Below are positions 3,898-54,461 of a stretch of DNA of 59,523 nt, in pieces. How positions within the stretch are numbered: position 1 is the first letter of the stretch; every line of letters starts with the position of its first letter. Source of the DNA: Hydrolagus colliei. Lineage: Eukaryota. Under the pieces are notes generated by a model. That model did no database searches and was not told the DNA's origin. It saw nothing but the letters and a program-made list of their open reading frames with translations. A program made the translations under genes and the position numbers. The stretch covers positions 1-59,523 of the forward strand of contig JAYJKW010000187.1 in assembly GCA_035084275.1 (NCBI GenBank), written 5' to 3'.

Positions 3898-4554
3898 TTG
3901 GATGTATACAGCGCCCTCGCTTCCTCACTCCACGGGCTCAGAGCGCTTCAAAAGCAACCGAGCCACGGGGAGGGGGAAGAAGGTGACCCAAAACGCGGTC
4001 GGAAAGAAAAGTCCTTTGGTGCGACCTGAAAATAGGAAGCGAGGGGGCGAGGCGAAGGGAGTGAGGGAGGGAGTTCCAGAGCCTCGGGGCACAGTGGCTG
4101 AAGGCACGGCCGCCGACAGTGGAGCCGAGGATTCGGGGACAAGGAGGAGTCTTGAGACGTGCATCAGCCGGGCGTCTGACACACACGGAAACACGGAGAG
4201 ATCTTGTAGACTGGAATTCTCCCATCTTCCCAGTTGGTAATTGCAGACACACAGTTAAGTCAAGATTTACTCTCGCCCAGGTTTACTCCAGTGCACATCA
4301 TTCCTGCCTCATTCCTGAGGTCCATGTTCCGTCTAATTGTCTTAAAATTCAGGATAGCACTGGCCAAAATTTGGAAAAGTCTCTAAATGGGATCTTCACC
4401 TGAAGCCGGTCTCTTGGTGAAACAGGCGGCAAGGCCGGATCTGGTTGTCTCCGGACTCAAGAATTCGGGAACAATGGACTGAGACCAGTGTGAATTTGAG
4501 AGTGTGGTCACTGCTGACTGGGTGAGCGCTGGGCTAGGGACACACCTCACCCAC

Positions 4555-32390: not shown

Positions 32391-35300
32391 ACCTTCTCTC
32401 TTGTTCTCCCCTCCTTTCCTTCTCTTTCCCTCCCACACTCTCTCTCTCTCCCTACCTCTCTGTCCTTCTCCCACCCCCACCAAAACAGCGTATAAACCCA
32501 CAATACAGTTAGGCTACACAGGCAATACATACATCAGGGAAAGAGAGGGAAAGCAAGAAAGCAAGAAAGCAAGAAATTGATTTTAAGGAATGTGAGCCAG
32601 AGCATTTGGACCAAATGGAGTGAGGTCTGTGTTTGTGAGTTTTGTTATTGTGTTTATAAAGACTTGATGTTACTGCTTTCCTTATTTCTAAAGGATGGTG
32701 TCTAACAGTTTATTTCAAGTCAATAAAATGTACATTGTGTTGATGTAAGAGACTCTACAATCAACGAAGAAGACCTAAATGTCAACATTCACAAAATCAG
32801 AAATGTGTGGCTTCAAGTTAACGTGACATTGTCCTGATGAATTGGAACTCTTGGTGCCTTCCAGTCTGCTTGGACGAGATCTTCAAGGGATTTTACGACA
32901 TAAAGGTGTCAAGAAAGGACGAGTGGTTGTCGAATGGAGTGAGGTCTTCACATATGGTGACAGAGGAACTCCAACTTCCTGAGATTAACATCCTGATAAA
33001 CCTTGGGGCCTCCCATGTGTGGAAAGCCGATTTGACTGATCAGTTCGGGAATGTGAATGAACAACTTTGATTGGCCTCTGGCTACACCTTATTTCATCAT
33101 CATGTGTCCGAACTTTGGGGTATAAAAGAATGAAACAAATGTTAACAATTTGGATACCACTGCGATACTGTTGAGACAGTATCAGTGAGATGATCCGTGT
33201 GGGTTCATGGCTCAATAATTAGCCCAAGGATTATTGGTGTGTTGGTGCCCTCAGGGAAGGTGGAGATCAACTGCCCTGAATCATCTTCTGCAGTTGTAAG
33301 CATGAGACTTGTAACTGTTTAGTAACTGTCTTTATGATTAATAAATTAACTCTTTTATTTATCACATTGCCTCTGTACTACCTTACCTCAGGGTCGTACC
33401 ACGTAAAAACCCTACAGAGAACTAGATGGACATGGTTTTTTATTCATGTAGCATTGCTTAACTTATATGATTACAGTTTTTTTACAATAGTTGTATCTCA
33501 CATTCTGTTATCAAGCATGAAATAGTAGCAAACACTATCATTTGTCTCAATGACGTGATACGATGCTGCAGCAAATGCAAGAATTATTTTTATAATAAAC
33601 TCAAAACAGGGACAGGGTAAGATGGTTGAAAGTGAGGTCAGAGAAGAATGTCGAGAGACAGACCTTGAAAGGAGGTGAGAGAAAAGGAAAGCTGAAGCGA
33701 CTTCAGGAAGGAGTTCTAGAGAGTGGGGGCTGAAAGCCAAGCCATGGATGGTGGTTTCGTGGTGCAGTGGACATGAAGCAAACAGAAACTTTTTCCCGCA
33801 AGTCCTAAAATCTTCCGCAGCTGGATTTTAAGGGTTCACCACATTCCTGCACCATCTTAGGTTTTAAGAGAAAATGTCTCACAGGCCCAGACAAGGTGGA
33901 ATTTAGGGTTTCTGTGGATCTATTATCCTGTATAGAACATGGGAGAAATGTAAAATACAAGATCACCAGAGCGTCAGTGAAGGAGAGGTTTTGATCATGA
34001 AAATCCTTCAGGCCATAAGATCAATGCTCAGCCTGCAGTCCTCCCATTTCACCATTGAGCTCAACAGTGACCTGTCACACTCTTTACACAACGCAATCCT
34101 GGAGGGTTGCAGGGACCTCGGTGTCTTTCCACCCCTACATGCTCACATACTCGCCATCTCCCTGCTCTACAATGTACTGTACCAAACCTCAGGCCAGCCA
34201 TGTGGTCTAGGCCTCTGGCCTCTTTGTTCCTCTCTTTGTTCCTCTCTACAGACCCAAAACACCTCGCTTACACATATTGCTGTCAGTTTATCGAATGCTC
34301 AACAACAACAACAAGAAAATGACACTTGTAAAGCGCCTTTCACGTCAGGAGGATGTCCCAAGGCGCTGGACAGTTACTGCTTCAGTCCCGAGCTGAGGAT
34401 GGGTGGTGGGGGAGGAAGGGGGGGATTAGGAGTTGCCGATGGGTCCATCGAAGATGAGAGTCTTGAGGTGAGACTTGAAGGAGACCAGGGAGTGGGTGAG
34501 GCAGAGGGACTGCAGGATGGAGTTCCAGAGGTTGGGGGCAGAGTGGCTGAAGGCTCGCCCACCAAAGGTGGGGTGGGTGGCTTGTGGTTGGGGGATGTAG
34601 AGCAGGTTAGAGCCTGCTGAGTGAAGGGAGGGGGCGGGCAGGTTGGTAAAGGGTAGGAGGTCACGGATGTAGGGTGGGACGAGGTTATGGAGGGCTTTAA
34701 TTATGAGGACCAGGATCTTGAATTGGATCCTCTAGATGATGGGGAGCCAATGGAGTCAGCGAGGATGGAGGAGATGGGGGTCATGGAGTTTGGAATGGTA
34801 GAGGCTGCAGAGCTCTGGATTATCTGCAGCCTGTAGAGGGAGGAATTGGAAAGGCCGACCAGCAGGGCATTTGCATAATTGAACTGGGATGCAATGAAGA
34901 CGTGGATGAAGGTTTCAGCGACTTTGGGGGTGAGGTAATGGCAGGGTCGGGCAATGTTGAGGCAATGGCGATGCCTTTCCCCATGTGGGGGAGGAAAGAT
35001 AGTTGAGGGTCGAACAAGACACCTAGGTTCCTGACTGGCTCAGTGAGATTGAGTGTGCAACCATGGAGGTTGATGCTGCTAGTCAAACAGTAGGTCCTCG
35101 GATCTTGTTTACATTCAACTGTAGAAAGTTAGCTCTCATCCAGGACTTGATGTCTGACAGTCAGTCTGTCAAGACAGTTGTAGTCCTGGAGCCGAGGGGG
35201 AAAGATAGAGTTGGGTGTCATCCGCATACATGTGGAAGTTAACCCAATGTCTGCGGATGATGTCACCAATTGGGAGCATTGTTGAAAAGGGGCCAAGGAC

Positions 35301-38300
35301 AGAGCCCTGGGGGACGCTACAGGTGATAGTACGGGGGCTGGAAGAGAAACTGTTGGTGGTGACAAAGTGTAGGCGATGAGAGAGTTAGGAGCCGAACCAG
35401 GGCAGGGCAGAACTTCCAGCCCACAAGCTTCCCTATCAGCCTGTCTGTCCCTCCGCTCAGCAGGCTCTGCATCCACCATCCCAGCATCGGGGGCCGGGCT
35501 TTCAGCCTCTCTGCTCCCACACTGTGGAACTCCATCCCACAATCCCTTCACCTCACTTCCTCTCTTTCCTCCTTCAAGGCCGGTCTCAAGACCTTCCTCT
35601 TCGACCGCGCGTTCTGCTCCCCTCCTAACTCTTCCCCCTCTCCTACTCTCCTTTCCCTTCCCCCTACCCCGACCTTTCCCCCCCTGCTTGGGTTCCGACC
35701 CGATTGTTCAGCGCCTTGGGATGTCCTCCCGACATGAAAGGTACTCTATAAATGCAATTTTGTTGTAGTTGTTCTCACAGTCTTCAAGGCACAGAAACAA
35801 TAAAGGATATGTATCTTGTCTGACGCAAGGTGGAAGATCAGAAGAAGCTGGTCAGCTTTTCATGGACATTACCTCTACTGCTGAAAGAACGCAACACAAA
35901 CAGGATTGTATTTGTATTTAATTCACAAAACGCATGGAGATTCACTCAATCCTTTAATTCAAACTTTACAAGTCACCCTCTTCCAAACCAATCTTTTCCA
36001 AACTCTCCTGGCAAACTATATAAAATGGTTCTGGGAAGTTACTGTTTTATACTAGCATCATCCGTATTCACTAAGGTCATTCATGCAATAAGCAACATCT
36101 CAACATCTTCCTTTTCATTTTTATTTTCTTTTTTCAATCTTGTTCTATTATTTTATTTCAAATTATATCAATGCACTTTACAGTATGTTCTATGAAGCGC
36201 TATCAAATGCCTAGAAGATGTGAAAAGCACTATCTCAAATGCAAGCATTATTATTATTATTTGTGGTCTTTTTGCTTCTCTTCCGCTTCTGGTTTTTCTC
36301 ACAGTTTCTGCTTTTCCTTTTCCTCTTGTTTTTATTGTTCTTTGTTTGATCTCCCATGACGTTCGTCTGTATTGCCTTTTTCATCTTTTTACCTAATAGG
36401 ATCTGGGGTTCTTATCTTTCCCCCCAATTTTTCCTTTGATCCCACCTTCCGTTTTTAGATTTCTCCTCCAAATCTTTTTTGAAAGTTTTTTTTCTTCAGT
36501 GGCTGTTGTCCTTGTTTCTCCAAATTTCTTTCCCATTTCTACGTAACTTTCCCATTTTTATTGTGCCTTCCAATCCTAATAAAGTATCAGCTTTTATTTT
36601 TATTCTACTTTGTCTCCCTGTCCACTTTCTCCATTTTTTCTTTATTTGGATTTCCCAATTTGATATATTCTTCCCATGCCATTACACTGGCCTGTGTTAC
36701 TGCATCTAATTTGCACTGAATTAAGTTCCTTCCTTCTATACACCATAAAGATACCATCCATTCATTTTTCTCTTCCACTGCTTCAATTTTGTACTCATCA
36801 TTGTGCTTTTCAATCCTTATTGACTCTCGTAGACAGTTTCCCTCCAGGTTCCATTTTCACTTCTACACCACGTAATGTTATTGAATCCACAAAACGCAAA
36901 GTAGATTCACTCAGTCCTTTAATTCAAACTTTACAAGTCAACCTCTTTCAAATCAACCTCTTTCAAACCCTCTTTCAAATCCGCAAGTCGCTCTTTCCAG
37001 AATCCTTTTATACTTGCATCATCCATATTCAATTGTCACGTACGTCATCAAGCAATATGCAACGAGGATGCTGGGCTATATTCTTAAAATGATTTTAGAT
37101 ACCCAAATGTCATACAAAGGATATAGAGTCAACTAATATCCAGAGTATTGCAATAGTAACCCTGGGAGGCACTCTGAAACGCCGTCCAGCATGGAGAGCA
37201 CTATATAAATCCAAGTTGTTGTTGGCTCTCTGTGGGAAATCGTAACCCTGACTGTGTGTGTGGGCAATAGTAACTGTGCTGCTTTTGAAGCGACTGAATA
37301 AAATACTTTATGAAAGTGCCATTCAATCCTCTGGGTTAATGTGTTTGCAAACAGCAGCCACAAAATGACATTTGTATAGTGCCTTTCACGACGAGATGAC
37401 GTCCCAAGGCCCGGACAGTCAGTGCTTTGGACACGAGTTAGCGCGGGATCGGGCAGGGCAGGGTGGGGCGGCGGGAGGTGGGGAAGGAGGAGGTTGATCG
37501 AAGGCATAGTTGAAGAAAAGGGTGCTGAAATACGCCAACAAAGTATACAGTCAATTCGCTTTATAGCATACAAAACACAACATTTCAGACTTTTCAGACT
37601 TACAGTCACTAGTGCAAGTTTGAAAGAAATTACTAATAACATTCCTTGTATTTGATATAGTGCTATTCATGTCTACTCACGTCAAAGCGCTTCACAGAGT
37701 ATACTGTAAAGTGATTTGACTGTGTATATTTGTGGGCAAACCCCCATCCTCCTTCATTGCCTCTCCTCTCAGCTCAATATTCATGGACCTGCCCTTGCCT
37801 GCTTCGACTTTTACGTTTCTCACTGTCTCCATTTTGTCACCACCAATGGCTTCTCCTCCAGCCCCCACACTGTCGGCTGTGGTGTCCCCCAGGGCTCTGT
37901 CCTTGGCCACTATTCTCAATATCTACATGCTCCCCTTTGGGGATATCATCCACAGATATCGGGTCAACTTCCACATCTACGCGGATGACACCCAACTCTA
38001 TCTTTCTGCTCCTACCATCGATTCCAGGACCACTGCTGTCCTGGGAGACTGCCTGGATGAGAGCTAACTTTCTACAGTTTAATGTTAAGAAGATCAAGGG
38101 CCTCCCGATTGGCTTGCTCCAGCACTTTCACTCATCAGGCACTGGCAGCATCAACCTCCATGGTTGCACTCCACCTCACCAAGCCAGTCAGGAACCTAAA
38201 AGTTATTTTAAAACGTACCATATTAATAATAGACTAAACAATAACAGAATATTGTATGGATATGCACAAATAAAGCATTCCAGCACACTCGGTAAAATGA

Positions 38301-41300
38301 TCGGTAAAAAAGCATTCCAGGGTTCGGTAAGCAGGAACGGCGCAAGGGTATTTGGCGCCCTAGGCGAGTCTTCAGATGTGAGGCCCCACATCTCCTGCCC
38401 TCTACCACATCTTTGTGCAAAAAGTGAGTGTCCTGGATGGATACGGTATGAGATCCGGTTGCTGGAATAGTGAATTGTATTGGGAAATACCGGTTGCTGG
38501 AGCGAAAGGCTTTTAATGACTAACAGAGAGGGGGAATCAGGGCAAGGAAGAGAAAAGAGAAAGTGGGGTAGGCAGCAGGAGATGATGGGTTAAAGAAGTG
38601 TTAATGTTGTGAAACAAAAGGGGAAATTGCAACAAAACTGGAGAGAAGAGGTGCTAATAACAGCCTCCTCCATAGACGGCAGAACTCTGCAGTCCTTGTT
38701 GTCCACCACTCCAAGCTCCATGATCCCATCTGCCCCATTCTCGTCTGACTCCATTGGCTCCCCATCACTCAACAGATTGAATCCAAGATCCTGGTCCTCA
38801 CCTTCAAAACCCTCCAGAGCCTTGCCCCACCCTACCTCTATGACCTTCTAACACCCTCCCAGCCTGCCCGCTCCCTCCACTCAGCAGGCTCCGGCCTACT
38901 CCTTGTCCCCTGACCCACTTGCCCCACCATCGGCGGGTGTGCCTTCAGCCACTCTGCCCTTAACCTCTGGAATTCCATCCCACAGTCCCTCCACCTTGTA
39001 CCCTCTCTGGCCTGCTTCAAGTCCCGCATCATACCCTCCTCTTCGATGGTCCCATCAGTCACTTCCTTTCCCTCCACCCTCCCTGACCCCGACCCCAGCT
39101 TGTGTCTGCAACATTGACTGTCCGGCAGCTTGGGACGTCCACTCGGTGTGAAAGTCGCTATTCAAGTGTAATCTTGTTGTTGTTGTTGTAAATAGTAGAG
39201 TAAGGAAACTTGCCTAAAGGGAATCAAACCCTGGTCCTCTCACTTGTCAAGTGTCCTAACCACTATGCTATAGGGTCCCCCCCATTATGTTTACATAGCC
39301 GTAATTCCTGTGAGAAGAGGGGTGTCACGTAATGTGTGGAGGTTCTTCAAGGAGATGGGTTGAGTGGAGGCTGTGTAATTTTTGTGTATTAGAGGTGGTG
39401 CCCCGACTGACAGCAGCGGTCACTGGGACAGGCTCCACAGCCACAGTTGGTTTTCTCTGGGACACAGAAAGTTATGTTGGGGTTTGGGGGGATGGTCTTG
39501 GAATTGAAACATCTGAGCAGAAGACATTGTAGCATCACAAGATGTCAGTACTTCCTGCAGCTGAATGACAAGAGGAAGCAGTAATGTTTATCAGTTGACC
39601 ACAATGTGGAAGTTTCAAAAGCTTTTGAGTAAATATACTGCCCCTCCCCTCGTGGATCCTCCCCTCAATACATCCCAACATTACCAGGCGAGCTTTCATC
39701 CTCTCTGCCTCTATCCTCCGGAAATCTCTTTCCAAATGCCCACAACAAATAACAACAACTCAATGACAATTGTATAGCACCTTTCATGTCAGGAGGACGT
39801 CCCAAGGCGCTGGACAGTCAATGTTTCAGATCTGAGCTGGTGTCGGGAATGGGGAGGGTGGTGGGAAAGTGGGGGATTTGAGATGACCAATGAGACTGTG
39901 GAAGAGGAGGGTCTAGAGATGGAACTTGAAGGAGGCTAGGGAGGGGGTGAGATGGAAAAGGGAATGTGGGATGGAATTCCAGAGGTTATGGACAGAGAGG
40001 CTGTAGGCTTGCCCACCGATGGTGGGTTGGGTGGGTCAGGGGGCTTGGAGCATGCCGGAGCCTACTGGGTGGAGGGGGCAGGAGTGTCGTTAGGTGGTTA
40101 AGAAGTTACAGAGGTAGGGGCGAGGTCATGGATTGCTTTGAATGCGTGGACTAGGATCTTGAATTGAATCCTCCAGGCAATGGTGAGGAGCTAATGGAGT
40201 CAAGTGAGAATTGGGGAGTTGGGGACCCAAAGTTTAGAGTGGTGGAGGACATGGGCTGCAGAGTTCTGGATTGATTATCTGCAACCTGTGGAGGGATGAA
40301 TTGGGAAAGCCTACAAGCGGGGTGATGCTGTAGTCGAGCCTGGATATGATGAATAATTGAATGAGGGTTTCAGTGGCCTGAGGGGTGAGGTGGTAGTGGA
40401 GTCGGGCAATATTGCAGTGGTGAAGGAAGGCAGTGTGGATCATGGCTTGGATGTGGGGGAGGAAAGTCAGTTGAGGATCAAACAAAACACCAAGGTTCTT
40501 GACTGGCTTGGTGAGGTGGAGTGTGAAACCTTAGAGGTTGATGCTGCCAGTGCCTGTGAAGCACTGACTGAGTGAGCCAGTCAGAAGGGTGTCTGTCTTG
40601 TTGACATTCAACTGTAGAAAGTTAGCTCTCATCCAGCACTTCATGTCTCACAGACAATCTGTCAGGACAGCAGTGGTCCTGGAATTGAGGGAAGCGGCAG
40701 AAAGATAGAGTCGGGTGTCGTCCGCGTACATGTGGTAGTCGACCCCATGTTTGCGGATGATATCCCCAAAGGGTAACATGTAGATGTTGAAAAGTAGGGG
40801 TCAAGGAGAGAGCCAATCGGGGATGCCACAAGTGACAGTGTGGGGGTTGGAGGAGAAGACATTGGGGGCAGCAAAGTGGAGATGGTGATTAGGTAGGAGT
40901 CAAACCAGGTGAGGACTAGTCCATGAAGATTGAGCTGGGAGGAGAGGCAGTGTAGGAGGATGGAGTGATTGACATCCATATCTCCTCACTCTCCGTGAGG
41001 TGGAAGGATTTGGGAATAGACAACATTCCTGTCAACCTCCCAGCTGAGACTCTCACCCAGTCCGTTGTGGAGTACATTGAGATGCTGTCTCTGTGTGACA
41101 TGCACATGGAAACAGAGCTGGCTGGTGACTGCTCTCAGGATAGACTGGATAGGTTGGGCATTTATTCCCCAGAGACGAGAGGTTTAAAAGGGGAACCAAA
41201 TAAATCAATAGTTTGAAATCATAAAATAATTCAATAACTAATTATTAGCATAATTCTGAATAGGCTGTTGTCACTGGTTGGGGAACTTTAAACAAGGGAC

Positions 41301-41639
41301 ACAAGCATAAGATTGCGGATGATTCACAGTTCCAGTCAAATCCATTGGCTTGGATGGAAGCCGGGTTTGAAGAACTATCCACAACTCAGTGCTATCTTCG
41401 CTTTGACAGTAAGGTTGTCTCTCAGGCAACCTTATGATGAGAGTTGGACTTTGGCAGTGACACAGAACAAGGGCTGAGGGAACAACTTCTTCACCGTGGT
41501 TTTAAACCCACACACCACTCGCTGGCCGGCTGGCCGGCTGGCTGGGTGATGTATCAGCAGCTGTGATCAGAAAAAGATATAATATTCTTCAGCGCAGTGT
41601 GATCATGGCTGTGAGTGGCTCTCATTGAGGAGGGAATGA

Positions 41640-41723
41640 AGAACTTCCTATTTCTTAATGTGGAGAGAAAGAGGAAGACATTTTCAGTTGAGCGTTGGGA
41701 GACACTCTCGTTAGTCACCGACG
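41640..41723 (+). promoter_or_regulatory. Putative proximal promoter/5' UTR with ETS (GGAA) motifs; mirror at 25706-25790
   Basis: acttcct at 41643 and aaagaggaag near 41668-41677 just upstream of the ATG; no obvious TATA box. Confidence 0.3.
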
Positions 41724-41784
41724 ATGCTGCCTCTCTGTGTTTGGTTTGCCAGCTTCCTCCTGTGGGGCACAGCACAGGCCTATG
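41724..41784 (+). CDS. Gene 2 exon 1: signal peptide
   Basis: ATG CTG CCT CTC ... GCC TAT G|gtatgt; identical to gene 1 exon 1. Confidence 0.85.
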
Positions 41785-44700
41785 GTATGTACTCCCTCCC
41801 CATTGTTACACTACTGTGGTCTCTGAGCGAGCGGTCAGTGAGGGGCAGGCGTTCTGGAAGATGGGATCAAGCAATGCCTCCTCGGGGGTTGGGGTGAAAG
41901 GGCTTTGAGATGTCACAATGATGTGTTGAGGCGTTATATCAAATGCAATGATTATTAATTATGTATTATAGCTGGTTCCCAGGTGACGCTTAACAAGGGA
42001 GCTCACCCTCTGTGACAATCTCTAAGCCGATTCCTGAGCCAGCCAAGTCCACACTCCTCCACTGCACTGCTGATGACAGCCCAGCCCAGCCTGGCTCATG
42101 GGCAGGACCTGGAAGGGCAGAACGGTCAGTGTGAGCAGGGAGTCAAACCACTGAGTTCCTGTTAACCCGACAAGCCAGAGCCCTAATGGTCAGGGTGATC
42201 CTAGCTTGACAATTAGAAAGCTTGAAAGTTAGAGGTCAATGGCAAGCTGCGTGGTTTTAGATGGTTTTAGATTCCAGCGGTTACCCCCAAAGCTCTGGGG
42301 TCACCAAGCATTGGGGTCCCCAAACTGTGCCTCATACTCTCCAGAATTCAGTAAAATAGGATCCTCCAGGGAGAGACTGCGGATTCCACTTCATAAGAAC
42401 ATAAGAATTAGGAGCAGGAGTAGGCCATTCAGTCCTGCGTGCCCGCTCTGCCTTTCAATAAGATCATGGCTGATCTTCTCACCTAACTCTGATTACCTGC
42501 CCTATGCCCATATCCCCTAATCCCTCTATTTTTAAAAAATCTGTCTGTCTCAGCCTTGAAAATGTTCAAGGACTGAGCATCTACAGCCTTCTGGGTTAGT
42601 GAATTCCATAAATTCACTACCCTCTGAGTGAAGAAATGTTTCCTCAACTCTGTTCTAAAAGGCTGACCCTTAATTTTAAGACTGTGACCCCTGGTTATAG
42701 ATTCTCCTACCAGGGGAAACAGTTCCTCAGTGCCTACTTTATCTAGCCCTTGAAGAATCTTATATGTTTCAATAAGATCCCCCCTAATTCTTCTGTACTT
42801 GAGGCTAGAGAATACAGCCCTAGTTTATTCAACCTATCCTCATAGGTCAGTCCACTCATCCCAGGAACTAACCTAGTGAATCTACGCTGCCCCCCCTCTA
42901 AGGCAAGTATGTCCTTCATTAAATAAGGAGACAAAACTGCACACAATACTCTCGGTGCGGTCTCACCAGAGCCCTATATAGTTGCAGCAAGACTTGCCTA
43001 CTCTTATACTCTAAACCTTTTGAAATGAACGCTAGCATGCCGTTCCCCTTCTTAGTTGCTTGCTGCACCTGCAAACTAACTGTTTGGGACTGGTGTACAA
43101 GGACACCCAAATCCCTTTGAATACTAACACTATCTAACTTCTCCCCCTCTAGAAAATAATCTATTCTTTTATTCTTGCTACCTAGGTGAATAATTTCACA
43201 CTTGCTAACATTGAATTCCATCTGCCACCTACTTGCCCACTCCCGTAACCTATCTATATCTTGTTGCAATCTTTTTGCATCATCCTCAGAGCTCACTCAC
43301 CTACCTAGTTTTGTGTCATCCACGAATTTAGACACATTATATTCAATGTCCTCGTCCAGATCATTGATGTAAATAGTAAATAGCTGAGGCCCAAGCACTG
43401 ATCCTTGTGGCTCACCACTAGTTACATCTTGCCAATTTGAGAATGATCCGTTCATCGCTACTCTCTGTTTCTACTCGATAGCCACTCTTCTATCCATGTT
43501 AATATTTTCCCATTAATCCCATTGGCCTTAATCTTGAGTAACAGCCTTTTGTGTGGCACCTTGTCAAATGCCTTCCTAAAATCCAAATATACCACATCTA
43601 CTGGTTCCCCCTTATCCAACCTGCTGGATACATCCTCAAAAAATTCTAAAAGATTAGTCAAGCATGACTTCCCTTTTGTAAAGCCATGTTGACTCTGCCT
43701 AATCTTTTTATGGTCTTCAAGGTATCCCATAACTACGTCTTTTATTAAGGACTCAAGAATTTTCCCTACAACTGGTGTCAGACTAACTGGTCTATAGTTT
43801 CCCATATTTTCTCTCCCACCCTTCTTAAATAGTGGAGTTACGTTTGCAATCTTCCAATCAATGGGGACTTTTCCAGTATCCACAGAATTTTGGAAGATTA
43901 TAGACATTCAAACATCGGGAAGTTTCATACTTATACAGCACTTCATACTTCTACTTATAAGAATTCTCATACTTATACAGCACAGAAGGAAGCCATTTGG
44001 CCATCGTGTCTATGCCGGCTCTTTGGAAAGAGCTGTCCAAATCAATCCCACTCCCTGCTCTCTCTCTCTCTCTCTCCTCATAGCCCTGGAAACCTGTCCT
44101 CCCCAAATATCCATCTACTTCTCCCTTGTTCTTTCCTTGTTCACCCTACATGTGACAGCTCCCTCTGCCCTCCTCCAGCCTGTAACTCACTCCCTGTGGG
44201 TGAGGGATTTATTCTCGATTTAAACCCCTGAACCCCTTGGATTAGTTTCCACCAGACTGGCTGCCCTCCTGTCTCTGCGGGAATCTGTGAGTTTATACAA
44301 ACGGCAGCATATGAGACATTGCCTGACTTTAATGCAGTGAACGTTTGTGTTTCTGTATGTGTGGGGGACATGTTTCTGCATGGGTCTCTGTATGTTTTTG
44401 TGTGTTGGGCGTCTGTGTATGTTTGTTTGTGTGTGTCTTGGGTGTCTGTATATGTTTGTTTGTGTGTTGCATGTCTGTCTCTGTATATGTTGGTGTCTGT
44501 ATATTTGTTTGCTTTGGGTGTCTGCGTATCTGCGTGTATGTTTGCATGTGTTGTGTGTCTATATCACTCAATGTCTCAGTACCTTGGCACGTCCTCCTGA
44601 CGCGAGAGGTGCTATACACCTGTACTTTTGTTGTTGTTGTTGTTGTATGTGTCTTGTGTGTCTGTGTACGTTTATGTCAATGTTGCCTGTCTGGTATGTT

Positions 44701-47700
44701 TGTGTGTTGGGAGTCTGCATCTCTATGTTTTTGAATGTTAAGTGTCTATGTCTCTGTGTGTTTGTGTGTCGGTTGTGTGTCTGTTATTGTGTGTTGGGTG
44801 TGTGTTTGCATGTATGGGATGTCTGTGTATGTTTGCGTGTATAGTGTGTGTTTCTGTATATTGTGTGTATATATTTGTGTATTGGGTGCCTGTGTCTCTG
44901 TGTTTGTGTGTGTTGGGTGTGTCTCTGTGTTTGTGTGTGTTGGGTGTGTCTCTGTGTTTGTGTGTGTTGGGTGTGTCTGTGTTTGTGTGTGTTGGGTGTG
45001 TCTCTGTGTTTGTGTGTGTTGGGTGTGTCTCTGTGTTTGTGTGTGTTGGGTGTGTCTCTGTGTTTGTGTGTGTTGGGTATGTCTCTGTGTTTGTGTGTGT
45101 TGGGTGTGTCTCTGTGTTTGTGTGTGTTGGGTGTGTCTCTGTGTTTGTGTGTGTTGGGTGTGTCTCTGTGTTTGTGTTTGTTGGGTGTGTCTCTGTGTCT
45201 GCGTGTGTTGGGTGTGTCTCTGTGTATATTGTGTGTATATATTTGTGTATTGGGTGTGTGTGTCTCTTTGTATGTCTGTGTGTGTAGTATTTCAATGTGT
45301 CTCTGCCCACACAGTATTCCAGAGGAACGGTTGGACAATGCTCGGCCCAGACGAAGTGAAGACTGAGATCGGGACGTCAGCCATCGTGTCCTGCTGGTTC
45401 TCCCACCCAAATCCCAATGACAGAGGTGACATCACGATCAAGTGGACGATCAATAACAATAAAGTCATCAGGTTTGAGTGCCGCTGGAACAGCCCAGCTC
45501 AGAGCAAGGCCGGCAAGTGTGAGACAATGGAACCGAAGCCCGGGGACGAGCGATACCGGCTGCTGGGGGACCCCTGGCATAACGACGTCACACTGATGAT
45601 AGACTCTGTGATCAGTCAGGACCAGGGGAGGTATATGTACCGAGTGGAGATTAACATCAAAGGGCAAAATTTTAATTCCCTCCACACCCAGCTGTCAGTA
45701 ACAGGTGAGACCATTGTGTCTGTGCTTCTCTATGACACAACAATCCATTCACTAACCTCCCCCTCCCCCCCCGCCCACTCCCCAATGCCCTACAATTGGC
45801 TTCTCTTCAGATATTTACCCAATTCCCTCCTGAAACCTCACCTGGATCCTGCCTCAATCCCTGCTCCCGGCCGGCGTTTCACAAACAATCGGAGAATCTT
45901 ACAGCACAGAAGGAGGCCATTCAGCCCATGATGTCTGTCTCACCCTGTTGAAAGAGCAATAACTAGTCCCTCCACTGTTACCCCAACTAGTCCCAAACCC
46001 CACTCTTAGCCCCAATTAGTCCCATTTCCCCCATTATTACCCCAACTAGTCCCACACCCCCCCCCCTTGTTATCCCAAATAGTCCTCACTCACCCTGCTC
46101 TTACCCCATATCCACATTTTTCCTTTTTAAGTCCCTATCCAATTCCCTATTAAAAGCTATTATTGAATCGGTTTCCACCCTTTCAGGCAGTGCATTCCAG
46201 ACTGTAATAACTCTCAGGGTAAAATCAATTCTCCTCATCTCCCCTCTGGTTATTTTGCCAATCACCTTAAATCTGTATCCTCTGATTTCTGACCCACTCG
46301 TCAGAGGAAAGAGTTTCTCTCTATTCGCTCGATCATAACTGCTCATCATTTTGAGCATCTGTATTAAATTATTATTATTATCAGTACCTTGGGACGTCCT
46401 CCCGACGTGAAAGGCGCTCTATAAATGTAATTTGTTGTTGTTGTTGTTAATCATTCTTGCATGGCTTTGCGTGATTGGCTGCCGCATTTCGCCCACAAAA
46501 TATACAGTCAATTCACTTTACAGTATATTACATGAAGCACTTTGAGACATCTCAAAGGCCTGATCTGATACTGTATCAAATGCAAGGATGATTTGATGTA
46601 GAGTTTTGAAGGCCTCTCAAAGCATTTCATGGAATATTCTGTGAAGTGAATTGACACCAGCTGAGGCCCAACCAGAGATTACTAAAGACTCAATATAACT
46701 TCTTTGCTTTTATGCTCTAAGCCTCTATTTATAGAGGTGACCATAAACACAGTCGAAGAGGAACGTCTTGAGGCATGATCTGAAAATGGGGAAGGATGGG
46801 GCCAGGTGGAGAGATTGAGGGAGAGAGAACAGGAGTTTATATATATATAATAATATAATAATCCTTGCATTTGATATAGCGCTTTTCACATCTTATCGAT
46901 TTCCCAAAGCGCTTCACAGAATATACTGTAAAGTGAAGTCACTGTATATATTTGTGGGTGAATCGTGGCAACCAATTGCGCACAGTAGTGTCCCCTACAA
47001 ACAGTCGTGGTTTGAAATGACCAATTTTATTGTTGTGGTTTTTTGGGGGGAGGCATTATTATTAGGCGTGTGGAGTAACGAAACTTGCCCAAGGTTTTGC
47101 CCTGACCTGCCTGGATTCGAACACAGGTCTCTCCAGCTTAGTCTCCCCAGCTTGCAAGACAAGTGCTCTAACCACTGAGCCACAGGAGTTTGGGGGAAAG
47201 TTTGACATTGTTATTCAAGTGACCTCTATACAGTTGAACTGTGTGTCCAGGCCACACCAGGGTACATTCAGCGGGGACCGGCCTGCTTCCTCCCCACCCT
47301 CTACTCTCCACCTTCGACAGTCAGCTTTCAGCCATTCAGCCCCCGCTCTATGGAAGTCCGTCCCAGATTCCCTCCGTCTCAAGCCCATCTCAAAATACAC
47401 ATCTTCGCCTGCTCTGAACGTCATTTTTCCCTCTACCTCTAATTAAGGTGCCCAGACACCAATGTCAACACTGTAAGTCTTAAGACATCCCCCCCCACAC
47501 CCTCCCCCTATCCTGAAAGGTGCTGGATAAATGTAAACTGTATTAAAACAGCTGCTGAGAAAGTAACAATGATGACTGTCTATCTGTCTGCCTGTCTGTG
47601 TATGTCTCTGTATATTGTATGTGAGTCTCTCTGTGTCTGGTATAGACACACATTGTCTATTTGTGTGAGTGTGTGTATTGTGTATAGCTGTGTGAGTTGT

Positions 47701-49674
47701 GTGTGTGTGTGTGTGTGTGTGGCTGTGTGTGAGTATGTGACTGTGTGTGTTTCTTCTCTGAGGTGGTGACACAAACAAGCGTCTGGTGATGGGGACGGTG
47801 GGAGAATCGGTGATGTTGCCTTGCCCACTGCCCCCTGATGTCAAAGGGTATAAACCTGACAATGTCACGTGGGTGATGAAGGAGCCTTACAGCCGGCTGG
47901 CGACCTTCAGACTGGAGGCTGGTTCCTGGGTTAGGAAGGAGGGTAAAGGGCGATATGAGCTGAGGGGGAGCATGGCTGATGGGAACATCGCACTGACAGT
48001 GAGCTGTCTGGTAATAGAGGACAATGGCACCTACCTGTGTCTAGTGGAGGCTGAGTGGGCGAAGAAACGCGTGGTGATCCAGAGGGAGATCAGACTCCAG
48101 GTTGAGATCAGCGTTCCAGGTAAGAGCCCTCGCTGACACATCCCTGACACATTGGACAGTGAAGAGTTTGCATCCGAGCTGGGGGCTGGAGTCAAGAGGG
48201 GAGGAGGACGAGGGGTTGGCGATGGGGGGATGAGTGGAGATGCAGACACAGAGGAAGGTCTTGAGATGGGTCTTGCAGGACACAAGTGAGAGGGTGAGGT
48301 GATAGGGATGGTGAGAGTATCTGTGATGCTCATTGAGATGTATTGGGATGGAATTCCAGAGATTGGGAGCTGTCCAGGTATGAGCCCTTTGTCCGCATCC
48401 TTGGATTTTGGTTATCAACCATAACCATATAACATCACACTAGCCTTGCACCTTGGGGAGAGAGCAGGGAATGGGCTTAGAATAGAGAGCTCCAATGGGG
48501 GAGTGAGCACCAGTACAGACACCATGGGGAGAGAGAGAGAGAGAGAGCAGGGAATGGGGTTAGAGTAGAGAGCTCCAGTGAGACAGTGAGCACCAGTACA
48601 GACACTATGGGGAGAGAGAGAGAGACCGAGAGCGGGGAATAGGGTTAGAGTAGAGAGCATCAGTGGGGGAGTGAGCACCAGTACAGACACTATGGGGAGA
48701 GCGCATTGAATGGATTATAGAGTTCCAGTGGGGGAGCGAGCACCAGCACAGAGGAAAATTTCTTGGTTAGAATAACTCTTCTTTCTTTATCGCCGAAGCT
48801 CTGGCCAACATTGGGCTGTGGCTGATGCCTGCAGCCAAATGTCTCGTTCTGTTGGTGATGGGGATCATTATCGCCTGTAACTCAAGAGGTTTGTCAATTC
48901 TTTGCTGTTTATATTTGAAATATAAAACCACTGGAGCTAATGGGCTTTTACTATAAACAAGATGTGTAACCTATCTTACCTGGGGAGAGAACTCAAAAAT
49001 ATCGCAGAGGAAAGTCACAACACTATTCATATCACCAGCGTGGTTACCAACCTGCTGTAAAATTATAGAGACCCTTATTGAGGATAAAATCACAGAGCAC
49101 TTGGATGGAAATATAATGAGAAAGGATAGCCGATATGGATTCATGAAGGGAAGGTCCTGCCAACCTAATTTACTGATTTTGTTTGGAAGCGTGGAAAAGA
49201 ACAAACCACTTTCATTTGTCTCGATGGCTTGATAAGAGGCTCCATCAAACGCAAGAATTATTATTATGATAAATTCTAAACAGGGACAGGGAAAGAGATG
49301 ATTGAAAGTGCGGTCAGAGAAGAAGGTTGAGAGATGGACCCGGAAGGAGATGAGAGAAGAGGAAAGCTGAAGGGGTTCCAGAGTACAGTCCAGAGAGTGG
49401 GGGAAGGTACGCTGAAAACTTCCCCAACTGGATTTTAAGGGTTTACCACATATCTGCGCTATCTTAGGTTTCAAGACAAAACGACTCCCAGACTGAGACT
49501 AGGTGGAATTTAGGATCTCTGTTGAGCTATTATCCCATATAGAACATGGGACCCAGTGTCTTCAAGTCATCGTGTTTGATTGGCTGCAAATTGATCCTAT
49601 TCTCATTGGAATATGGCCAGTAAACGTTTTTTCCTTTCTCCCAAGATCGTAGAAGATCAACAGAGCGTCAGTGA
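41724..49674 (+). CDS. Gene 2: predicted activating Ig-superfamily receptor (SP - Siglec-15-like V - V-set - TM with Lys - short basic tail), 308 aa, 5 coding exons
   Basis: Exons 41724-41784, 45315-45704, 47763-48119, 48799-48888, 49646-49674, all joined in phase 1, total 927 nt, open. Confidence 0.82.
42394..43910 (-). mobile_element. 5'-truncated CR1-type LINE in gene 2 intron 1
   Basis: ORFs 43458..43907 ([38 protein letters not shown]) and 42919..43296; cttatgttctta tail at left end. Confidence 0.9.
44850..45240. repeat. TG-rich ~26 bp minisatellite (gttgggtgtgtctctgtgtttgtgtgt) before the V exon; mirror at 23470-23760 with fewer units
   Basis: Tandem units seen directly; unit number differs between arms. 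Confidence 0.85.
45315..45704 (+). CDS. Gene 2 exon 2: Siglec-15-like V-set domain
   Basis: 390 nt phase 1-1 exon; 13 nt differences from gene 1 exon 2; [11 protein letters not shown]. Confidence 0.9.
47763..48119 (+). CDS. Gene 2 exon 3: V-set domain (A type)
   Basis: 357 nt phase 1-1 exon; ORF 47786..48136; extra Cys (SCLV instead of SSLV). Confidence 0.9.
48460..48753 (+). repeat. ~60-70 bp tandem repeat (gttagagtagagagctccagtgggggagtgagcaccagtacagac) upstream of gene 2 TM exon
   Basis: About five units; a single homologous unit lies on the minus strand at 13291-13335. Confidence 0.8.
48799..48888 (+). CDS. Gene 2 exon 4: TM with central lysine [30 protein letters not shown]
   Basis: Acceptor tctttctttatcgccgaag|, donor GAG|gtttgt, 90 nt phase 1-1; hydrophobic stretch interrupted by a single Lys. 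Confidence 0.78.
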
Positions 49675-52600
49675 AGGAGAGGTTCTGATCATGAAAATCC
49701 TTCAGACCACAAGATCAATGCTCAGCCTGCAATCCTCCCATTTCACCATTGAGCTCAACAGTGACCTGTCACACTCTTTACACAACGCAATCCTGGAGGG
49801 TTGCAGGGATCTCAGTGTCTTTCCACCCCTACATGCTCACATAGTCGCCATCTCCCTGCTCTACACTGTACTGTACCAAACCTCAGGCCAGCCATGGTCT
49901 AGGCCTCTGGCCTCTTTGGTCCTCTCACACGGCCTACAGACACTTCTCTCATACACGTCTGTCTGTCAGCTTATCAACCACTTACAGCCTCCAGCCCACA
50001 GACACTCACAGCCCACAGCCCATAAGCTTATCACAGCCTTCAAGGCACAGAAACAACAAAGATGTGTATCTCGTCTGTCCACAACCCAGAATATCAGAGG
50101 AAGTTGGTCAGCTTTGCACGGCATTTACCTCGACTGCTGAATTCAAACTGTACAAGTCGCCCTCTTTCATATCAACCTCTTTCAAACTCTGCAAGTCATT
50201 GTTCCCAGAATCATTTTACACCAACATTATCAGTATTCAATTGCTACTGAGCTCATTAACGCAATAAGCAGCATTCTACTCTGTCTCCCTTAACATATAC
50301 TTCTATCTCTAGCCTACCCACTGTTTCATTTTTTTCTATGTTATACGCCATTAGTTTACCTTTCCCCTTCTCCATTTTTTCCCATTTTTTCCCATAATGG
50401 TGAAGGCTGGTTTTCCCAATTTGATATATTCTTCCCTTGCCATTACTTGCAGCATCCACATTCAATTGTCAGTTACGTCATTAAAGCAATATACAACGAG
50501 GATGCTGGGTTATATTCTTAAAATAAGTTTAGATCCCCAAATGTCATACCTAGGATATAGAATCAACCCACGTCCAGAGTATTGCAATAATAACCCTGGA
50601 TCCCTGTGGGCAATTGTTACCCTGACTGTGTGTGTGTGTGGGCAATAGTAACTGTGCTGCTTTTGAATTGACTGATTAAAATACTTCATGAAAGTGCCAT
50701 TCAATCCTCTGGGTTAATGTGTCTGCAAACAACAGCAACAAAATTACATTTGTATAGTGCCTTTCACGACAAGATGACGTCTCAAGGTGCCGGACTGTCA
50801 GTGCTTTGGACACGAGTTGGCGCGGGATTGGGAAGGGCAGGGCAGGGTGGGGAGGAGGTTGATTGAAGGAATGGTCGAAGAGGAGGGTCCTGAGATGTGC
50901 CCACAAAATATACAGTCAATTCACTTTGTTGCATACAAAACACAAAACGTACTGGATAAACAAGGTTTTACTGCGCTACAGATGCTGGAAAATTGAAACA
51001 AGGCAGGCAGCATCTATGGAGAAAGGAAAAGTGAGTCAATGTTTTGGGTCCACGATCCTTCATCAGAACTGGGAGGGAGAAGCCTTTAAGGACTAACAGA
51101 GAGGAAGAGACAGGGCAAGGAAGACAAAAGAGAAAGTGGGGTAGAGGGCAGGAGATGATGGGTTAAAGAAGTGTTAATGTTGTGAAACAAAAGGGGAAAT
51201 TGCAACTAAACTGGAGAGAAGAGGTGCTAATAACAGCCTCCTCTATAGACGGCAGAACTCTGCAGCCCTTGTCGTCTGCCACTCCAAGCTCCGTGACCCC
51301 ATCTCCCCCATTCTCACCTGACTCCATTGGCTCCCCATCACTCAACTGATTGAATCCAACATCCTGGTCCTCACCTTCAAAACCCTCCAGAGCCTTGCCC
51401 CACCCTACCTCTATGACCTCCAAACACCCTCCCAGCCTGCCCGCTCCCTCCACTAAGCAGGCTCCGGCCTACTCCTTGTCCCCTGACCCATCCGCCCCAC
51501 CATCGGCGGGTGTGGCTTCAGCCACTCTGCCCCTAACCTCTGGAATTCCATCCCTCAGTCCCTCCACCTTGTACCCTCTCTAGCCTCCTTCAAGTCCCAC
51601 ATCATGACCTTCCTCTTCGATGGTCCCATCAGTCACTTCCTTTTCCTTCACCCTCCCTGACCCCGACCCTAGCTTGTGTCTGCAACACTGACTGTCCGGC
51701 AGCTTGGGACGTCCACTCGGTGTGAAAGTCGCTATTCAAGTGTAATCTTGTTGTTGTTGTTGTAAATAGTAGAGTAAGGAAACTTGCCTAAAGGGAATCA
51801 AACCCTGGTCCTCTCACTTGTCAAGTGTCCTAACCACTATGCTATAGGGCCCCCCCCATTATGTTTACATAGCCGTAATTCCTGGGAGAAGAGGGGTGTC
51901 ACGTAATGTGTGGAGGTTCTTCAAGGAGATGGGTTGAGTGGAGGCTGTGTAATGTTTGTGTATTAGAGATGGTGCCCCGACTGACAGCAGCGGTCACTGG
52001 GACAGGCTCCACAGCCACAGTTGGTTTTCTCTGGGACACAGAAAGTTATGTTGGGGTTTGGGGGGATGGTCTTGGAATTGAAACATCTGAGCAGAAGACA
52101 TTATAGCATCACAAGATGTCAGTACTTCCTGCAGCTGAATGACAAGAGGAAGCAGTAATGTTTATCAGTTGACCACAACGTGGAAGTTTCAATAGCCAGT
52201 CAAGTGCTTTCGAGTAAATAAAATTCCCCTCCCCTCGTGGATCCTCCCCTCAATACATCCCAACATTACCAGGCAACCTTTCATCCTCTCTGCCTCTATC
52301 CTCTGGAAATCTCTTTCCAAATGCCACAACAAATAACAACAACTCAATGACAATTGTATAGCAGCTTTCATGTCAGGAGGACGTCCCAAGGTGCTGGACA
52401 GTCAATGTTTCAGATCTGAGCTGGTGTCGGGAATGGGGAGGGTGGTGGGAAAGTAGGGGATTTGAGATGACCAATGAGACTGTGGAAGAGGAGGGTCTAG
52501 AGGTGGGACTTGAAGGAGGCTAAGGATGGGGTGAGATGGAAAAGGGAACATGGGATGGAATTCCAGAGGTTACGGACAGAGAGGCTGTAGGCTCGCCCAC

Positions 52601-52782
52601 CGATGGTGGGTTGGGTGGGTCGGGGGGCTTGGAGCATGCCGGAGCCTACTGAGTGTAGGGGGCAGGAGTGTTGTTAGGTGGTGAGGAAGTCACAGAGGTA
52701 GGGGCGAGGTCATGAAGTGCTTTGAATGCGAGGACCAGGATCTTGAATTGAATCCTCTAGGCAATCGCGAGCTAATGGAGTC
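48970..52782 (+). repeat. Direct segmental duplicate of about 33400-40202
   Basis: Shared ORFs (MKILQ..HNAILEGCRDL at 33991 and 49613; MCGGSSRRW at 39332 and 51906); match ends at ctaatggagtca (40202 / 52782). Confidence 0.8.
49646..49674 (+). CDS. Gene 2 last coding exon: DRRRSTERQ-stop
   Basis: Strong acceptor ttttttcctttctcccaag|AT CGT AGA AGA TCA ACA GAG CGT CAG TGA; in frame with the TM exon. Confidence 0.65.
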
Positions 52783-54461
52783 AGGTTTGCTAGCGACCGC
52801 AATGTGAAGCTGCCAAGAGTCAGTCTCTGCTGGGGCTGGGTCAGTGTAGCTGCCACGAGTCGGTTCCTGTACAGACTGGGTTAGTTGAGTAGTTGAGTTG
52901 GTTTAGGCGGAGGTGGATCACGGTTGGGGTTGTTTACTTTGCTGAATTGTTAACTTGGCTGAGTTGGTTCTGGCCCTTGCCTTGAGTGGGTGGTTGAGTC
53001 AGTTCAGGGCTGAAAGTCTGCAATTGTCCTTCGAGTGGACTGTAAATCACACTCAATAGTGTTTCTCTGTGGTGGTGAAGGGAAAGAATCTGAACCTTGG
53101 GTAACGAGAGCCCTGTGGGATCGATCGTTGTTGATGGTTTGACTGATCTTTGTGAGACAATACAATTTGTTGTATTTATGGATGATTTTTCTCACTCAGT
53201 TTCATCATTTGCAGATTTGACAACGAAGCTCCTTTCTGTCGGTTGTTGCTTGGCTAGTGTTGGATTCGGAAGAAATGGGAGTTTTCTCAAAGAAACGATC
53301 TTCAGTCATCACAGAGTTTTATGATCTTTTTATTCAGTACTACATCCCAGTTATAGTACAGGCACTCCTCTTATGATTCGAATATGGCTTGTTAGTTCGA
53401 ACAGTTGAATCTTGGAGGATTCAACACATATATACTCAGTTCGCTTTCTTTGTCCTACAGGACCCAATCAGTTAAGACAGTATTGCCCAACCAACATGCC
53501 CATATTAGGAGCGTTATCCAATGGTCACACACACTGGTTATCTTTCTACACTACAAAGTTATCTGATCCAATGGTCACACACACTTGTTATATTTCTACA
53601 ATACATAGTTATCTGGTCTAAATCAGTCTAAACTGCCAGATAAACACAAACGTGTTGTTACAGAGTCACACACAAAACTGCTACATTCCAACAGCTAGGA
53701 TCTCCTTGGTTATTCCGAAGTTGACCTGGAGCCCGCCCATCCCTGCGATTGGCCTTGTTCACCTCTGGGCTTCACCTCAGCCGTCAACCGAAGTTAGGTC
53801 TGAAACTCTTGCCATTTTTCTATTTAGCCAATCTCTGGATCACATTGTAGGTCGAGTTGGGAAGTTGTTAGGAACAGAGGCTGAGGTTTGATGGGGACAG
53901 GACGAGGGAGATGTTGTTAGATTAATGTGGAGCTCACAGACCGGGTTGATGATAGAGTTGGTGAGCACAGAATGTAGGAACACAGACATTGAGGTTACCC
54001 ACTATAGTAGGCACTGTAAGATGAGGACAGAAATTAATCATTTCTATTACAATAGTTTGAGCTGAGAGAGTGAAGTTGTTTGGAATTGGCCAGAGGCAGA
54101 GCCTGCAAAGGTTCAGTCGGTCGGTCGGTCAGTCAGTCAGTTGGTTCCACCTGCCTGGCCGTGAGCCTCCCGACCCAGTGGGTGGAGTCAGTCGGCTGGA
54201 GTGGCTAGGAACACTCAGCCGGTTAGGCAGCATCTATGGAGAAAATGAGCAAACATTTTCGAAAGAAGGGATGATGGACCCGAAAGTTGATTCACTTTCC
54301 TCTCTCCATAGATGCTGCCTGACCTGCTGAATGTCCCCAGTGACTCCTGTTTTTATTGCAGCAGGTTGTACTTGTCGGATTAGTTGAAGAAGAGTAGGAG
54401 GTTGGCTCACATAAATGCCGGCATAGACCAGTTGCTAAATGGGCTGTTTCTACGCTGTAAA

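Follow-up and report, generated by a model that had tools for sequence, protein, structure and literature searches.

We analysed a stretch of 59,523 nucleotides (nt) from the chimaera Hydrolagus colliei (contig JAYJKW010000187.1, forward strand), here called the window, which is vertebrate DNA with introns, long interspersed nuclear element (LINE) fragments and simple repeats, and found that one of its genes, gene 2, is predicted to encode a receptor with two immunoglobulin (Ig) domains, a membrane span bearing a single lysine and a very short tail. All positions follow the numbering of the whole window unless a locus of another species is named. The exons encoding the second Ig domain, the membrane span and the tail are joined at the same splice sites in an orthologue from Callorhinchus milii, and a head-to-head neighbour, gene 1, is likely the inhibitory-type counterpart of which gene 2 is likely the activating twin. 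Judged from sequence comparison, gene 2 is probably a functional activating receptor coupled to an adaptor, and the predicted activating/inhibitory pair is an old one in concerted evolution, as in primate Siglec-5/14. One further lysine-bearing activating receptor would, alone, hardly surprise an immunologist; what is added here is an orthologous locus in Callorhinchus with conserved splice sites and a pattern of identities in which the ectodomains group by species and the membrane spans by type.

Exons, membrane span and tail of gene 2

The five coding exons of gene 2 are listed below, TM standing for transmembrane.

41724 to 41784, plus strand: leader (signal peptide) exon, 20 residues plus 1 nt, followed by donor gtatgt
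45315 to 45704, plus strand: V1 exon, a Siglec-15-like V-set domain (Pfam V-set; best solved relative Siglec-15, 7zoz) with the sialic-acid Arg, R130, kept in YMYRVE
47763 to 48119, plus strand: V2 exon, a second V-set domain (Pfam V-set) of TIM/pIgR/CD300-like type, with Protein Data Bank matches to TIM-2, pIgR and CD4
48799 to 48888, plus strand: TM exon, (A) plus 29 residues (48801-48887), placed by acceptor, donor, frame and the orthologous Callorhinchus exon
49646 to 49674, plus strand: terminal coding exon, (D)RRRSTERQ-stop, of which 49648-49674 reads RRRSTERQ and the stop

Joined together, these exons give 927 nt, or 308 codons with a single, terminal stop and no frameshift, and we hold this exon model to be right with high confidence. 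All junctions are of phase 1 with AG/GT borders and agree with the phase-1 donor of the V2 exon at 48119. Specifically (a caret marks the exon border), the TM exon lies between the acceptor ...cgccgaag^CT and the donor AAGAG^gtttgt, the tail exon follows the acceptor ttttttcctttctcccaag^AT, and the codon g^at split across the TM/tail junction gives Asp. The sequence-only reading of this DNA had proposed the two small exons at 48799-48888 and 49646-49674, and translation, splice sites, the 308-codon frame and the Callorhinchus junctions all agree with the way it read them.

The membrane span extends approximately from I274 to C296, and K283 (codon AAA, 48837-48839) is the tenth of its 23 residues and the sole charge there. 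The tail that follows is basic, 12 residues long and without Tyr, and contains no ITIM or ITAM (immunoreceptor tyrosine-based inhibitory and activation motif, respectively) or other tyrosine motif; within the window, no tail exons of gene 1 were found downstream of gene 2. The lysine is also present in the Callorhinchus orthologue and a Callorhinchus paralogue, and the orthologue tail is Tyr-free too. Both the lysine-bearing span and the minimal tail without a tyrosine motif, as previously predicted, hold good.

The orthologue was reached by a search with V2, which led to the C. milii RefSeq model P0168, with 72% amino acid identity in V2. After V2 this model continues as ...SSPG-LAAIYILWLIPAVKCLFLLVMGIILVCNTR-DRTRSQELQVKENI, and across the TM/tail region it reads ...LWLIPAVKCLFLLVMG...NTR^DRTRSQELQ..., with V2, TM and tail spliced together through the acceptors and donors that gene 2 has. 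The corresponding Callorhinchus locus (L003), in which the gene parts include 10001-12225, is collinear with gene 2, beginning at the leader and extending into the 3' flank, with nt identity of about 73-84%, and L003/P0168 is the orthologue of gene 2. The TM exon of L003 (10837-10929) has the same acceptor (cgaag^) and donor (AAGAG^gtttgtcaattctttgctg) as gene 2; the tail-exon acceptor, tttttcctttctcc[c/t]aag^ATCGTA, is also shared, with the reading frame kept. The tail exon of L003 (12181-12222) reads DRTRSQELQVKENI followed by a stop, and a 1-nt deletion in the window tail exon places the stop of gene 2 five codons earlier, so the Callorhinchus tail differs in being five residues longer, in addition to having one extra residue before its Lys. 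Common to both species are the Lys itself, the Cys directly after it (K-C; window 48840-48842), a Cys at the cytoplasmic edge of the span (window 48876-48878) that might be palmitoylated, and the first tail residues, D-R-x-R-S (RRRS in the window at 49646-49662, RTRS in Callorhinchus). P0168, labelled 'hepatitis A virus cellular receptor 1 homolog', takes a Met within V2 as its start, but an intact leader exon (4388-4441) and V1 exon (6288-6674) lie upstream of this start in L003, and the model therefore appears to be truncated and misnamed; our comparison corrects the annotation under which the orthologue has been carried. In the paralogous Callorhinchus locus L002, a lysine-bearing TM sequence shares 85.7% nt identity over 119 nt with the gene 2 TM exon. 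A shifted tail acceptor suggested by the L002 alignment was rejected, since the orthologous L003 keeps the acceptor.

Exons as short as 90 and 29 nt, both absent from the mechanical list of open reading frames (ORFs), might be chance open frames in non-coding DNA, but the probability of this is practically negligible. Among 3269 phase-compatible, AG-started segments in 11.4 kb 3' of 48119, the TM exon is the sole strongly hydrophobic one nearby, the next being 9 kb off in low-complexity sequence. The two small exons go beyond chance because the TM exon is the only such candidate in the region and because an annotated Callorhinchus protein contains their orthologues, joined through identical splice sites. 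Transcripts of gene 2 could also end otherwise, by read-through at 48888 (22 residues and a stop), at a weaker acceptor at 49620 (10 residues and a stop) or in a distant exon. Both near alternatives are open in the sequence, the Callorhinchus paralogue P0159 has an isoform with a different C-terminus after the same TM exon, and no plus-strand AATAAA occurs within 2.5 kb of the gene 2 stop, where the only A[AT]TAAA-type matches are at 50480 and 50675. Such an ending is nevertheless highly improbable, as the acceptor at 49646 and the 16 pyrimidines of its tract match base for base between the window and Callorhinchus, and the RefSeq model splices there; moreover, neither near alternative adds an ITIM or ITAM, and the activating-type reading would stand with either of them.

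Gene 1, the inverted duplication and concerted evolution

Gene 1 is encoded on the minus strand, head-to-head with gene 2. Its V1 exon (23390-23007) and four exons of V2 type, the latter within 19757-14178, give five Ig domains against the two of gene 2. It has an exon reading DSCQYATIL, akin to the ITIM-like motifs of inhibitory homologues, and its membrane span is as follows.

13155 to 13241, minus strand: TM exon of gene 1, uncharged, YVFPVAIAVSMCLLVLLVTILIVCCKKK, resembling the TM and KKGG/KRGG of the inhibitory homologues P0021, P0121 and P0169

Each of the two genes represents one arm of an inverted duplication about 10 kb long (38499-48359 versus 28588-19164). Nucleotide identity between the arms is 100% in the leader exon (25705-25645 in gene 1), 96.7% in V1, 97.8% in V2 (taking the first V2-type exon of gene 1 for comparison) and 93.7% over the first 240 nt of the intron after V2, and the homology ends at 48359. 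The TM exons of the two genes share only 53.6% nt identity. They are nearly equal in length and stand in the same place after a common 83-bp element, which is single-copy before the gene 1 TM exon (13292-13339, minus strand) and in Callorhinchus L003 (10694-10741) and is repeated in gene 2.

48458 to 48701, plus strand: tandem array of 2.9 copies of the 83-bp unit (found with TRF), in the intron between the end of homology at 48359 and the gene 2 TM exon

The TM exons of gene 1 and gene 2 may be diverged copies of one exon, but 53.6% nt identity between two hydrophobic segments is no evidence of homology.

Comparison with Callorhinchus revealed opposite groupings for the two parts of these receptors. 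In V2, identities were 90-97% within the window and 94-100% within Callorhinchus, where P0169, for example, combines a V2 of 94% identity with a neutral TM resembling that of gene 1, and they fell to 70-74% between the species; the TM plus tail of gene 2, in contrast, was 69% identical to that of P0168 and 18-33% identical to the neutral TMs. This species-versus-type pattern, read from identity matrices of one domain in two species, indicates that the pair predates the divergence of the window species from Callorhinchus and that its ectodomains have evolved in concert, because the ectodomains are grouped by species and the membrane spans by type. The ligand-binding exons may have been kept alike within each species through gene conversion or re-duplication.

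Around the two arms, the window contains further copied and inserted sequence, including a second copy of the tail-exon region.

33956 to 34234, plus strand: dead relic derived from the tail-exon region, with 95% identity to 49650-49926 and no acceptor segment

The relic has lost about 98 nt including the acceptor, and the loss can be read as a deletion in the relic because Callorhinchus keeps the segment that is absent from it; a role for this copy as a second tail exon was rejected, since it lacks the acceptor segment that gene 2 and Callorhinchus both keep. A five-residue IGLWL match at 33070 was dismissed as chance, the surrounding DNA being unaligned. The tail-exon region, its 3' flank and an upstream region also take part in a direct collinear duplication (33502-40205 versus 49176-52786) with 78-95% identity, which appears to be what is left of a former tandem gene unit overwritten by the inversion. 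LINE reverse-transcriptase fragments were found at 42483-43907 (minus strand) and, shorter and in the last intron, at 49077-49185. One insertion, about 1.6 kb long and lying in gene 2's intron 1, has no counterpart in gene 1 and therefore postdates the duplication.

Predicted function of gene 2 and evidence on selection

The product of gene 2 is predicted to be a 308-residue type I membrane receptor consisting of a signal peptide, V1, V2, a lysine-bearing membrane helix and a 12-residue basic tail. A protein of this kind, having no signalling motif, would be unable to signal alone, and K283 would dock with the paired Asp residues of a dimeric ITAM adaptor within the membrane; on meeting the same ligands as the inhibitory gene 1, the complex would then cause Syk-type activation instead of phosphatase recruitment. 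In Siglec-15, an activating Siglec found across vertebrates, Lys274 of the human protein is reported to be essential for association with DAP12 (PMC6941304), and replacement of the Lys, which is conserved from fish to mammals, with Ala abolishes the binding of DAP10 and DAP12 (PMC7226832). More generally, a motif of two Asp and one basic residue is reported to be necessary and sufficient for assembly (bioRxiv 10.1101/2020.12.22.424036). Because the TM of gene 2 is of the Siglec-15 type, DAP12/TYROBP would be the likeliest adaptor, and we put it forward tentatively as the specific partner; that gene 2 acts as a functional receptor coupled to some adaptor of this class seems to us probable.

A functional gene 2 could instead use another Asp adaptor, such as one like FcR-gamma, DAP10 or CD3-zeta, or could serve as a non-signalling ligand sink or decoy. 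For example, Siglec-15 itself also shows a weak interaction with DAP10 and a minimal one with FcR-gamma (PMC6941304, PMC7226832), and the activating KIR of macaques use FcR-gamma and not DAP12, according to PMC8102735. However, the basic residue in gene 2 is Lys rather than Arg and lies at mid-upper depth as in Siglec-15, and the main partner of a Siglec-15-type TM is DAP12 (PMC6941304), which makes a function independent of DAP12 distinctly unlikely.

Several points weigh against a functional, DAP12-type receptor. In V1, the F-strand Cys of the Ig disulfide is replaced by Tyr. The TM Lys of seven proteins named Siglec-15, from bird, mammal, frog, lungfish, teleost and ray, aligns with K283, but these sequences were chosen for having a TM Lys and the agreement is thus partly built in. 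We found no paper on DAP12/TYROBP in cartilaginous fish. As for selection, the ratio of nonsynonymous to synonymous substitution rates (dN/dS) between the species was 0.91 for V2 and 0.61 for the TM exon, on few sites, leaving constraint unproven; the ratio of nonsynonymous to synonymous differences (pN/pS) between gene 1 and gene 2 was 2.1 and 1.3, on 21 differences. In the comparison with L002, the TM exon was 84% identical and the adjacent intron 89%, so the exon was no better conserved, and between the arms of the duplication the exons diverged by 2.6% and the non-coding DNA by 4.2%, a mild difference (p = 0.03). The selection tests are too weak to decide between function and drift.

The same data bear on a rival explanation, in which gene 2 is a young and non-functional product of birth-and-death evolution, with an ectodomain lately copied or converted from the inhibitory gene and a TM and tail that are drifting. 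Since the arms differ by only 3-5%, the open frames of V1 and V2 say little. A dN/dS near 1, a TM exon that was conserved no more than its intron when compared with L002, two small length changes relative to Callorhinchus (1 nt deleted in the tail and 3 nt inserted or deleted in the TM exon), the dead relic of the same tail region at 33956 and the LINE insertion in intron 1 would all fit such a history. On the other hand, two species have retained all five exons, the four splice junctions, the Lys and a tail beginning with D-R-x-R-S at a proportion of synonymous differences (pS) of about 0.17-0.25, the leader of gene 2 is identical to that of gene 1, the 308 codons contain neither an internal stop nor a frameshift, and the exons are somewhat less diverged than the non-coding DNA. 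Taken together, these features render a decaying gene 2 unlikely, and a functional activating receptor remains the reading that we prefer.

Relatives in cartilaginous fishes and comparison with known Siglecs

An exhaustive HMMER search with V1 found no protein with more than 47% identity over the matched stretches, near-full-length matches to V1 having 26-39% identity, and the lack of a close match implies that gene 2 itself is unannotated in the protein collection searched. A word-indexed protein search with V1 inside its 398-amino-acid ORF gave no match, and one with the TM and tail of the Callorhinchus protein P0008 gave Callorhinchus matches only. The matches to V1 include a family of cartilaginous-fish proteins labelled 'uncharacterized', some of which have a lysine-bearing TM and a short tail (P0014 of Rhinoraja, P0018 of Chiloscyllium and P0008 of Callorhinchus), whereas others (P0016, P0021, P0011 and P0028) have a neutral TM and a long tail with C-x-Y-A motifs, in the form C-x-Y-A-x-[IL], like gene 1. 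True Siglec-15 proteins of birds, a mammal, a frog, a lungfish, teleosts and a ray were likewise among the matches. The skate Rhinoraja P0014 and the shark Chiloscyllium P0018 resemble gene 2 in their V1(-V2)-TM(Lys)-short-tail plan. Specifically, P0014 (locus L001) has a V1-V2-TM(K) plan with K-T-LVLLVM, a separate TM exon and a terminal exon of 10 codons about 0.8 kb further on. Identity to gene 2 in the Ig domains of P0014 and P0018, however, is only 27-42%, and the phase in which the TM exon ends is 2 in P0014 but 1 in gene 2.

Among solved structures, V1 of gene 2 (Pfam V-set) is closest to Siglec-15 (7zoz, E 3.4e-10), followed by CD33 and Siglec-7, and in the 7zoz alignment its Y-R-V-E, with the essential Arg, matches C-R-V-E-F of Siglec-15; sugar binding by V1 is a prediction. 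The canonical Ig disulfide has lost one Cys in each of the orthologous V1 domains (L003 6288-6674 and window 45315-45704), but not the same one: the window V1 keeps the B-strand Cys (VSCWF) but has Y-M-Y-R-V-E, and the Callorhinchus V1 has MSLWF but keeps Y-L-C-R-V-E. V2 was assigned to the V-set (Pfam PF07686, E 7.9e-13, 49 bits against a cut-off of 26), with TIM-2, pIgR D4, CD4 and CD300 as its nearest solved relatives, and almost no stalk follows it, giving a V-V-TM plan. An extra Cys in V2 of gene 2, C232 (TVSCLV), is Ser in all four gene 1 V2 copies (TVSSLV) and Arg in Callorhinchus; it could be an unpaired Cys for dimerisation, or merely a recent change.

Gene 2 and Siglec-15 are alike in being of type I with two Ig domains and in having a single, aligned TM Lys, with Pro and small residues before it and x-L-x-L-L after it. 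The earlier proposal that two Ig domains mirror the topology of Siglec-15 is inexact, since Siglec-15 consists of a V-set and a C2 domain whereas domain 2 of gene 2 is a V-set, and the Y-E-N motif of the tail is absent. The Siglec-15 tails retrieved contain STYENF, STYENV or SNYENL, and the 12-residue tail of gene 2, lacking Y-E-N, departs from the tail of about 40-55 residues with a Y-E-N-type motif expected in the Siglec-15 orthologue group. Further differences are the Tyr in place of the F-strand Cys in V1 and an identity of V1 to Siglec-15 proteins of only about 30-37%, because of which gene 2 is to be placed in a paralogue family and not regarded as a Siglec-15 orthologue. In addition, gene 2 has an inhibitory twin next door, and to our knowledge Siglec-15 is not known to have one.

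In primates, as described in PMC4042635 and PMC5701461, the activating members of the Siglec-5/14 and Siglec-11/16 pairs have a basic TM residue and a short tail and signal through DAP12. As in the window, the inhibitory and activating genes of these pairs adjoin, and their ligand-binding exons are near-identical through gene conversion. The similarity ends before the TM in the primate pairs as well, comparable to the drop from 97% to 54% identity between gene 2 and gene 1 and to the species-versus-type pattern. The pairs differ in that gene 2 and gene 1 arose independently in cartilaginous fish, from a stock that is Siglec-15-like and not CD33-related, and are arranged head-to-head in a 10-kb inverted duplication, in which the inhibitory partner carries five Ig domains and gene 2 carries two.

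Paired receptors are taken to record an arms race: a pathogen turns an inhibitory receptor to its own use, and the host counters with an activating copy that recognises the same ligand. The data from the window and its relatives raise the possibility, which we advance with some reserve, that cartilaginous fishes (chimaeras, sharks and rays) possess a hitherto undescribed paired-receptor family that stems from a Siglec-15-like gene, that its DAP12-type Lys module predates the split between holocephalans and elasmobranchs, and that the ligand-binding exons of the partners have been repeatedly homogenised. If true, the family would be an independent and far older case of the pathogen-driven pattern of inhibitory receptor and activating counter-receptor seen in Siglec-5/14 and Siglec-11/16; a Siglec-type pair in a chimaera would mean that this solution arose independently, long before mammals, and the family would provide a natural test for the age of the Lys-Asp rule of adaptor assembly.

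The lysine-bearing span was also found on another type of ectodomain. In the Callorhinchus paralogue LOC103174418 (L002 22722-23090 and 57298-57666), a single exon encodes both a C2-set domain and a Lys-TM of this type, and over its first 45 nt the next intron shares 89% identity with that in the window, indicating from the C2-set fusion that the Lys-TM module occurs on different ectodomain scaffolds.

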